DNA of 60,850 nucleotides, counting the filler, from Dugesia japonica (Eukaryota), in NCBI GenBank assembly GCA_001938525.1. It is 5 parts of 5 records of this genome, joined end to end, with 100 filler letters (N's around TTAATTAATTAA, not from the genome) between each part and the next. Parts side by side here need not be neighbours in the genome. Positions count along the whole stretch, not along the records: positions 1 to 23,301 come from MQRL01596401.1; 4 more parts are not named here. One strand, 5' to 3'. Below, piece after piece: positions 4,863 through 6,119 of the stretch. Position numbers and translations under genes: made by a program. The notes beneath the pieces were generated by a model. The model was not told where the DNA came from. It saw only the letters and a list, made by a program, of their open reading frames with translations, and did no database searches. Position 1 is the first letter of the stretch. Every line of letters starts with the position of its first letter.

Positions 4863-6119
4863 TTAGTTTTCAATGAATTCATGTTTCATTAATTGATCTA
4901 TTGTTGATCTCTTTTTTGGATCTCCTTTCAAACAACAATCAATAAAATTGATTAAATCTGTTGATAGATCTGTTTTATTATATTCAATTGTTTGGAATTT
5001 TGTTATATTATCTTTGATCTTTTGAACTATTTGGAAACTACTAAGACCTAAGAAAAGTTTTCCACCTATAATTAAAAAAAAATATTAGTAATCAATATAA
5101 TATTCACGTTTGACCACAAATATCATAATAACACCAAGTGACCACACATCAGCACTCGCGTCATGAGGTTTACTTTCCAATATTTCTGGTGCAACAAATC
5201 TCAACACTCCATGTTTATATTCACTTTTATTTTCATGAAGATGATTTAAATATTCAGTCATATTGAAACTTGGTAATTTAACATCATGATTGCTGTCAAT
5301 ATAAATATCCAGTGCTAATATAAAGATTATATTTCATTTATATAATTAATAATATTACGATTCATGTCTTTGATAATTATATTATGATTATGCAAGAATT
5401 TGAGTCCTTCTAGCATTTGATTTGCCCATTTAGACATTACATATGTTGGTATTTCATTATTAATATTTTTTTTCAAGAATTTCTTCAGTGTAACCTTAAT
5501 AAAAATGATTATTAATAAATATTATAATTTCAATACACAAATGAAACCTCTGTGAAAATATCCAATCCTATATAGATCCATTCGTTATCCATATAAATAT
5601 CAATAATTTGAATAAATTTTGAGTGAGATTTTGTTATTTGAAATGTTTGTAAATCTTCTTCCAAGATCTTTCTTAAGTCCTTATTGTTATTATGCTCAAT
5701 TTCCATGAAGTTCTTTTTGTAGGCCTTTATTAATAATTGCCGATTGCTAATTTTATTTTTTACTCTGGATATTTGGAGATGATCATATTCTTTAGGATCT
5801 TTCATATTTTCAATTTCATCCAAACTAAATCTGTTTATATTTTACATATTAATTAATTTATTAAATATTTAATTAATTCACACTTTTTGAAATAACAAAA
5901 TTCCACCAATGATTTACCATCAATATTATATTCATAAATGAATTTATCATTTTGTAATAATTTCTTATTGAGAAATACAACAAAATGATTGGTTGCCATT
6001 TTGTGTTGTAATTTCTTTCTAGATTTATTGATAATATCTAATACAGTTTCAAATTTTGAGAATTCAATTGATATTGTTTCTTTTGCAGTGAAAATTGATT
6101 TCATCGTAATAATTTTCAT
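4863..6119 (-). CDS. Ubiquitin-like domain fused to a protein-kinase-fold domain (probable pseudokinase); exons 6119-5884, 5830-5548, 5494-5359, 5314-5108, 5065-4863
   Basis: Four GT-AG introns of 53, 53, 44 and 42 nt give one open frame; kinase motifs QMLEGLKFLHNHNIIIKDMNP, FVAPEIL, ADVWSLGVI, DPKKRSTIDQLMKHEFI; N-terminal UBL-like pattern (ETVLDI..LNKKLLQNDKFIYEYNI). Confidence 0.85.

Follow-up and report, generated by a model that had tools for sequence, protein, structure and literature searches.

Does a very AT-rich and apparently decayed stretch of planarian DNA conceal an intact gene in which a ubiquitin-like domain is joined to a kinase fold stripped of catalytic residues, and, if so, what would its product do? 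The DNA in question is a window of 60,850 nt from Dugesia japonica (GenBank assembly GCA_001938525.1), the whole stretch analyzed here, in which five parts of five records are joined by filler and positions 1 to 23,301 derive from MQRL01596401.1. The locus occupies the minus strand at positions 4863 to 6119. A preliminary description, made from the sequence alone, had proposed that five exons separated by tiny introns encode a fusion of an N-terminal ubiquitin-like domain (UBL) and a pseudokinase, an intact and lineage-specific scaffold or decoy signaling protein. The locus is a gene of five exons, it is expressed, it combines the two folds, it has lost several catalytic motifs, and it has many relatives in the same genome. 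It is likely that this is a transcribed, spliced, and polyadenylated gene with an integral UBL N-terminal to a pseudokinase fold, that its product functions non-catalytically, and that it belongs to a lineage-specific family.

Gene Structure and Reading Frame

Read directly, the minus strand between 4700 and 6300 contains five exons (E1 to E5) joined over four introns (I1 to I4), each exactly where the preliminary description had placed it (Table 1). The joined frame of 1065 nt begins with the ATG at 6119-6117, ends with the TAA at 4865-4863, and comprises 354 codons and the stop, uninterrupted by any internal stop codon. All four introns are of the GT..AG type and have a GC content of 0.09-0.13, in a window whose GC content per kb is itself 0.17-0.30, i.e., very AT-rich. 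Because introns of 42-57 nt break up the coding sequence, scans based on open reading frames (ORFs) miss the genes of this genome, and the family described below escaped annotation for the same reason. When neutral evolution was simulated with substitutions only and 10% divergence, a frame of 354 codons remained free of stops in no more than 0.0002 of trials, which argues that the open frames are under selection. Two other explanations of the frame were ruled out: an alternative genetic code, by the lack of any in-frame TAA, TAG, or TGA in the 354 codons and by the agreement of the frame's end with the end of the kinase fold, and a retrogene origin, by the conservation of intron positions in paralogues. 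The joined sequence was used for this frame check only; the domain searches and structure predictions that follow were made exon by exon.

Expression and Splicing

RNA mapping examined the stretch from 4500 to 6700, and a single run, X1, was informative for the window copy. Contigs from X1 match the exons without mismatch, and their coverage extends only from 4720 to approximately 6130, with zero depth in the flanks, including everything below approximately 4650. The contig at 4720-4899 carries a loose end of 15 T residues before 4720, the poly(A) tail of a minus-strand RNA. Two short contigs contain the joint 5830>5884, which removes intron 1 (5883-5831) exactly and splices the UBL exon to the kinase exons; the junction that the preliminary description had named as its check is therefore present, and the two parts are not separate transcripts. 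Intron 3 is likewise removed exactly (joint 5314>5359), and across intron 2 a loose end at 5496 reads CTGTGAAAA, the sequence from 5550 on, as expected of a spliced continuation. The label of X1 as RNA is a guess by the tool, and we argue that the run is RNA because it combines spliced joints, a poly-T end, and silent flanks. In stranded raw reads of a second run, X22, the first mate maps nearly always to the plus strand, the pattern that transcription of the minus strand would give; these reads derive mostly from paralogues, being 95-99% alike and only partly aligned.

The last intron behaves differently from the others. No junction of the modeled 42-nt intron 4 was seen in the mapped RNA contigs; instead, one X1 contig has a joint at 5045>5106 (cut shifted by +2), which removes 60 nt (5107-5048) in frame and deletes GKLFLG, and another, at 5018-5135, is unspliced, so that the protein would end after VVKREYYIDY. 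The paralogues preserve GT and AG at an intron 4 site of the 42-nt type. A further X1 contig, at 5714-5795 within exon 2, has a loose end of 10 T residues before 5714, which may represent internal polyadenylation, a priming site, or a paralogue.

The Ubiquitin-Like Domain

Exon 1 alone matches the Pfam ubiquitin family (PF00240) with E=4.4e-4 and 20.4 bits, under the gathering score of 25.4; homologous exons of paralogues, as well as an upstream exon of the window designated U2 (see The 5′ End of the Gene), exceed that score. A profile built from an alignment of 23 E1-homologous exons of the same genome (profile A1) aligns with ubiquitin chains of the PDB in the same register, positions 11-68 to 11-68, with E values of 5e-6 to 9e-4 per single ubiquitin. 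The AlphaFold2 model of E1 has a predicted local distance difference test score (pLDDT) of 90.9 and a β-β-α-β-β topology. Among the top 50 matches listed by Foldseek for this model, almost all are ubiquitin, ubiquitin variants, or NEDD8, with template modeling (TM) scores of 0.79-0.88 and root-mean-square deviations of 1.2-2.3 Å; the best, to ubiquitin and NEDD8, reach TM scores of 0.83-0.88 at 1.2-1.8 Å. Profile, model, and structural matches agree in predicting a domain of the ubiquitin family (PF00240) with a β-grasp fold, the fold on which the preliminary description had staked its reading of the N-terminus. The domain ends in ...EFCYFKK and passes directly into the kinase N-lobe, and the C-terminal Gly-Gly of conjugatable modifiers is absent. 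Lacking this motif, the domain is an integral, non-cleavable UBL and not a modifier.

The Kinase-Like Domain

The remaining exons match the Pfam Pkinase profile collinearly, E3 at profile positions 85-124 (E=1.6e-4), E4 at 129-190 (E=8.3e-10, over the gathering score), and E5 at 209-263. Exon 2 alone gave no Pfam match. A profile from a 23-sequence alignment of E2 homologues (profile A2) returned 88 matches at E<=1, and all 60 of those listed are kinases, aligned over their N-lobes only and led by SIK3 (E=0.02), then MARK3, CDK9, and ULK3. The SIK3 alignment places LLIKAY on the VAIK motif and the acidic residue before an invariant Leu on the αC Glu. The AlphaFold2 model of E2 (pLDDT 75.8) shows three strands, a helix, and two strands, and Foldseek returned only kinases for it (PDK1, SIK3, and PLK4; TMq 0.5-0.69). 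Together these profiles and models assign the predicted fold of E2 to E5 to the protein kinase superfamily (Pkinase, PF00069). The nearest solved kinases differ from exon to exon, namely SIK3, MARK3, and CDK9 for E2, ASK1, MEKK2, and WNK for E3, RSK2, PLK1, and MST4 for E4, and TTK, MEK5, and MST for E5, and from these a weak hint may be drawn that the fold originated in the STE or "Other" groups.

The motifs of catalysis are retained in part. The β3 Lys is present as K35 of LLIKAY in at least 90% of the 23 sequences, and Asp or Glu stands before the invariant L60 at the αC position. The window copy also keeps the HRD Asp, the APE motif (as VAPE), and DVWSLG of αF. The GxGxxG of the Gly-rich loop is absent, the corresponding EYDHLQISRVK being devoid of Gly where close paralogues read DFGHI with one. 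HRDxKxxN is represented by IKDMN-P-LD, in which the Asp remains but Asn stands for Lys and Asp for Asn. The DFG Asp is missing from KLPSFN, and SFN occupies the DFG site in the window copy as well as in every close paralogue. The exon translations thus contain what the preliminary description had listed (no Gly-rich loop, IKDMN for HRDLK, and retained APE and DVWSLG), with one correction: DFG is indeed replaced, but its strict counterpart is SFN, the P of the proposed PSFN being the preceding residue.

A pseudokinase is usually defined as a kinase fold without at least one of the β3 Lys, the HRD Asp, and the DFG Asp. The last of these is missing family-wide, and by its sequence the domain fits this definition. 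Loss of the DFG Asp had been the original ground for calling the protein a pseudokinase; beyond this Mg-binding residue, the protein has also lost the Lys and Asn of the catalytic loop and the Gly-rich loop. Judged by these motifs, the domain is most likely incapable of canonical Mg-ATP phosphotransfer. It could nevertheless still be an enzyme of a non-canonical kind, with displaced residues as in WNK and atypical kinases, or with metal-independent or other chemistry. The family-wide conservation of the β3 Lys, the αC acidic residue, and the HRD Asp would still allow nucleotide binding or catalysis of an unusual kind, the strong conservation of the replacement SFN suggests a selected function at the DFG site, and there is precedent in several predicted pseudokinases that bind nucleotide or keep activity. 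Such an enzyme is nonetheless very unlikely: neither of the two Mg ligands, Asn of the catalytic loop and Asp of DFG, remains, the Lys of that loop and the Gly-rich loop have gone with them, and the exon-wise analysis identified no compensating residue.

A Lineage-Specific Gene Family

The gene is not a solitary one. The paralogue search that the preliminary description had called for was run on the contigs of the genome (854 Mb in 648,594 contigs) and yielded no fewer than 57 matches for E1, 42 for E2, and 140 for E4, the last being kinase-like matches, of which approximately 30 exceed 57% identity. Nearly all of the exon matches in the genome are free of stops. Three contigs (C452200, C452201, and C452202, from G000) carry identical copies of exons 1 and 2 of one paralogue, with equal scores, and the family counts therefore include assembly duplicates or alleles. 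By sequence comparison, the gene belongs to a lineage-specific, fast-evolving family of at least 30-60 copies. Eleven fully covered copies share the five-exon structure, with the GT and AG of introns 2 to 4 kept and intron lengths of 43-55 nt. The close copies, approximately 25 in number, have the motifs I[IM]KD[ML]N and KLPSFN, and in a divergent subfamily (30-40% identity) HRDLN is preserved and the DFG site reads SSFN, SNFN, or SSFD. Because the degenerate motifs are shared across copies, the loss of the metal ligands predates the radiation of the family, and the residues that replaced them have been conserved.

Relatives outside this genome were sought in three ways. Profile A1 was searched against 1.84 billion representative sequences, and the best 150 matches were all proteins with at least three ubiquitin repeats, with no single-stretch member of the family among them, so that the family is either missing from this set or not represented in it. 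The 204-amino acid (aa) open frame of a paralogue, which spans the UBL, an in-frame intron, and the N-lobe, had no match in a word search of 5.8 billion clusters, in which the candidates were restricted to 112-357 aa and longer forms with three UBLs would be missed. A search of the literature turned up no account of UBL-pseudokinase fusions or of kinomes expanded with UBLs. The profile and word searches having produced no relatives beyond this genome, the claim of lineage specificity stands.

Divergence among the copies is uneven. Ratios of nonsynonymous to synonymous substitution (dN/dS, NG86 method), another check that had been proposed, are 0.46 for E1, 0.48 for E2, 0.34 for E3, 0.67 for E4, and 0.96 for E5; over this range of 0.34-0.96 the frames are held open, with weak constraint on the amino acids. 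Comparison of window positions 4790-6190 with 11 paralogous loci (L004-L038) gave mean pairwise DNA identities of 0.85, 0.69, 0.80, 0.83, and 0.815 for E1 to E5, of 0.68, 0.70, 0.905, and 0.85 for I1 to I4, and of 0.61-0.63 for the flanks. Exon 2 is the most divergent exon, and median dS is 0.18 in E1 vs. 0.63 in E2. From this mosaic of identity and dS it follows that E1 and a C-lobe block, introns included, have been homogenized and that an N-lobe cassette, consisting of E2 and its flanking introns, has not; gene conversion, or constraint on the tiny introns, is suspected as the cause. Copies resemble one another at the DNA level only over 4790-6190 and 6727-7011, and the spacer at 6130-6750 is essentially unique. 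An origin by transposition or as part of a large segmental repeat was ruled out, copy similarity ending at approximately 4790 and approximately 6190.

The same mosaic would also be compatible with a diversifying recognition or decoy system, in which pseudokinases with three UBLs combine constant modules homogenized by gene conversion with a hypervariable N-lobe cassette that is kept diverse. In its logic, such a system would resemble the variable-region gene families of immunity or of host-parasite conflict. We know of no described counterpart among pseudokinases, and we regard this extension as quite unlikely.

Is the Window Copy a Functional Gene?

Several observations weigh against the reading of an intact, functional member of the family. 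The dN/dS values are high, above all in E5 and E4, and the introns are about as conserved as the exons, which together indicate weak amino-acid constraint. The window copy has a TAA where 11 of 11 aligned paralogues have TAT and read approximately 8 codons further, and it lacks any glycine in the loop region. On the side of expression, the identity of X1 as RNA was guessed by the tool, RNA runs other than X1 mostly returned paralogues, and in X1, the sole informative run, the window copy shows either retention of intron 4 or the use of an alternative acceptor.

These points could be accommodated if the window copy were a decaying, expressed pseudogene, even if other members of the family function. 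Its early TAA, the loss of the glycine that paralogues preserve in DFGH, and a dN/dS near 1 in exon 4 against the paralogues are all as decay would leave them, as is the fate of intron 4, which is either retained, with a premature stop, or cut at an acceptor specific to this copy, with loss of GKLFLG. Set against this are the fully open frame of 354 codons with its four intact GT-AG pairs, the correct splicing of introns 1 to 3 in a polyadenylated RNA, and the position of the approximately 8 missing residues past the kinase fold, where they are possibly dispensable. On balance decay of the window copy is unlikely.

The 5′ End of the Gene

The first exon as modeled may not be the first exon of the gene. 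Upstream on the minus strand, an 85-codon open frame at 7010-6756 encodes a further ubiquitin-family domain (Pfam 27 bits, over the gathering score; U2), and a half-domain at 7332-7180, ahead of a run of N, is another candidate (U1). Seven paralogous loci likewise have U2 ahead of E1, in matching orientation and 300-3760 nt away. U1 has 11 paralogous copies in the genome, and its assignment as a UBL is weak, a match to UCH_UBL1 (E=4.3e-5) being found in a divergent homologue only. It is quite possible, if tentative, that the five-exon model is the 3′ part of a longer gene in which U1 and U2 are spliced to E1 to give a pseudokinase with three UBLs.

In favor of such a gene, three divergent loci (L033, L040, and L047) have exons UBL-A, UBL-B, and UBL-C before the kinase exons, separated by phase-2 GT-AG introns of 57 and 43 nt, and their UBL-C exon has no ATG. 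U1 and U2 are homologous to UBL-A and UBL-B and have identical order and strand, and the placement of U2 ahead of E1 in the seven loci just mentioned also speaks for the longer gene. In L060 a U1 homologue is joined to a U2 homologue by a 49-nt phase-2 GT-AG intron with a donor, AA|GTAA, that resembles a stop codon; the end of U2 in the window, GA|GTAATT, repeats this pattern, and GAGTAAT is kept in 8 of 8 copies. This GAG-TAA may, however, be the conserved stop of a separate small UBL gene. Read directly, a join 6757|6123 would be in frame. No RNA junction at 6757|6123 was observed, in a mapping that reached 6700 only, and the intron between U2 and E1 would measure 633 nt (300-3760 nt in paralogues), where every other intron in the family has 42-57 nt. 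U1 in the window lacks a start codon, and no exon further upstream was found. In L040, an ORF resembling the reverse transcriptase of a retrotransposon lies at 1862-2092 on the minus strand, just downstream of the three UBL exons and where kinase exons would be expected; this copy may have been disrupted by insertion.

Evidence at the boundary of E1 itself cuts both ways. Six of 10 close paralogues have an ATG at the corresponding position; the other four have ATA or ATC, with the frame still open. Nine of 10 paralogues retain a (T/C)AG triplet before E1, L009 having CAG for TAG; in L021 TGG stands in place of the acceptor AG. X1 depth falls from 147 (6054-6127) to 0.63 (6128-6201), within approximately 10 nt of the AG at 6124-6125. 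Alternatives to splicing from U2 are trans-splicing at this AG or a very short 5′ untranslated region (UTR). The longer gene would alter the architecture and not the mechanism, and it is compatible with the reading of a UBL-pseudokinase gene preferred here.

Table 1. Positions of the exons, introns, and associated features of the UBL-pseudokinase locus, counted along the window.
Feature	Positions	Strand	Remarks
Exon 1 (E1)	5884..6119	minus	236 nt; ubiquitin-like domain, 78 codons + 2 nt, without C-terminal Gly-Gly
Intron 1 (I1)	5831..5883	minus	53 nt, GT..AG; RNA joint 5830>5884
Exon 2 (E2)	5548..5830	minus	283 nt; kinase N-lobe, β1-β5 + αC
Intron 2 (I2)	5495..5547	minus	53 nt, GT..AG; kept in 11/11 paralogues
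Exon 3 (E3)	5359..5494	minus	136 nt; αD-αE and catalytic loop, IIIKDMN at its end
Intron 3 (I3)	5315..5358	minus	44 nt, GT..AG; RNA joint 5314>5359
Exon 4 (E4)	5108..5314	minus	207 nt; KLPSFN, activation segment, VAPE, DVWSLG
Intron 4 (I4), as modeled	5066..5107	minus	42 nt, GT..AG
Exon 5 (E5)	4863..5065	minus	203 nt; C-lobe αF-αI, stop TAA 4865-4863
3′ UTR	4720..4862	minus	poly(A) site near 4720
Candidate splice acceptor AG	6124..6125	minus	4 nt upstream of E1 ATG; cis-splicing, trans-splicing, or unused
U2, upstream ubiquitin-like exon	6757..6987	minus	acceptor AG 6989-6988; end GA|GTAATT
U1, first half of ubiquitin-like exon	7180..7313	minus	without ATG; interrupted by N run 7179-7012

Proposed Function and Significance

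If the kinase fold no longer transfers phosphate, its action would be non-catalytic, through binding or allostery. The UBL, or UBLs, might dock ubiquitin-binding partners or regulate the kinase fold in cis, a proposal made by analogy with the ubiquitin-like domain of IKK and TBK1 and with other pairings of a β-grasp module and a kinase. A role as scaffold or decoy, as originally suggested, is a reasonable inference from such analogies.

Pseudokinases are increasingly seen as signaling scaffolds, and those known are few, old, and mostly single-copy. The family presents a new domain combination for pseudokinases, a ubiquitin-family domain, or possibly three, ahead of a kinase fold that has lost both metal ligands, and thereby joins ubiquitin-recognition machinery to a kinase-fold binding module. 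Its paralogues form a natural series for asking what selection on a dead kinase fold preserves.

Other Features of the Window

Downstream of the gene, on the plus strand at 2233-3888, a 340-codon ORF matching the reverse transcriptase family RVT_1 is followed by ORFs interrupted by runs of N, the remnant of a retroelement. The 3′ part of this remnant (3733-3887) is also present close to two of the paralogous loci. The longest ORF free of N after the reverse transcriptase ORF, at 12516-12968 on the plus strand, encodes 150 aa from a TTG start and has no Pfam match. The rest of 9900-23301 contains short ORFs only.

Comparison with Known Systems

The nearest architectural counterpart emerged from the search with profile A1. 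In protein P0066, 11 ubiquitin repeats stand ahead of a kinase-like domain; it has approximately 45 relatives, including a sponge sequence entered at NCBI as "polyubiquitin-like isoform X2 [Dysidea avara]" (P0187). These proteins (P0066/L059 and P0151-P0187) make up a large unannotated family with 5-11 or more ubiquitin repeats and a kinase of the tyrosine kinase-like (TKL) type, known from metagenomes and a sponge record; the sponge member is labeled simply "polyubiquitin-like [Dysidea avara]" in NCBI. Like the planarian proteins, they combine N-terminal ubiquitin-family repeats with a kinase fold in a single chain and belong to expanded multigene families, and some have degenerate catalytic motifs, with H-C-N for HRD in P0066 and P0151. 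They differ in having 5-11 or more UBL repeats where the planarian proteins have 1-3, and in their kinase domain, which is PK_Tyr_Ser-Thr (TKL-like) with HRDVSAPN and DLG and looks catalytically competent in most members. No specific similarity to the P0066 family was found, E1 alone giving no match and E4 being 40% identical over 37 residues only, and the common domain order is likely, on these comparisons, to be convergent or very remote.

The comparison first drawn, with IKK-α/β, TBK1, and IKK-ε, holds as far as the reversed order is concerned, but it is not the sole relevant one, given the N-terminal-repeat kinases of sponge and metagenomes. These kinases also combine an integral ubiquitin-like domain (ULD) with a kinase fold in one chain, and the ULD contacts and regulates its kinase. 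Their order is kinase, ULD, and helical scaffold domain, and they are active enzymes with canonical HRD and DFG motifs. The planarian protein is not one of them: its UBL precedes the kinase fold, its frame stops right after the αI region without a scaffold or dimerization domain, its motifs are degenerate, and E1 matches ubiquitin itself and not the TBK1_ULD family.

With canonical pseudokinases such as STRAD-α, TRIB, NRBP1, and ILK, the protein shares a kinase fold retained despite the loss of catalytic elements (Gly-rich loop, catalytic-loop residues, DFG Asp, singly or in combination), and a non-catalytic scaffold or allosteric role would be expected of it as of them. It is not orthologous to any of these, and none of them has an N-terminal ubiquitin-like domain. 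A small β-grasp module N-terminal to a kinase is also found as the PB1 domain of MEKK2/3 and MEK5, the RBD of Raf, and the DCX domain of DCLK, modules that mediate protein-protein docking. Those kinases are active, whereas the planarian module belongs, by its register over positions 11-68 and its top matches to ubiquitin and NEDD8, to the ubiquitin family proper, and the fold that follows it is that of a predicted pseudokinase.

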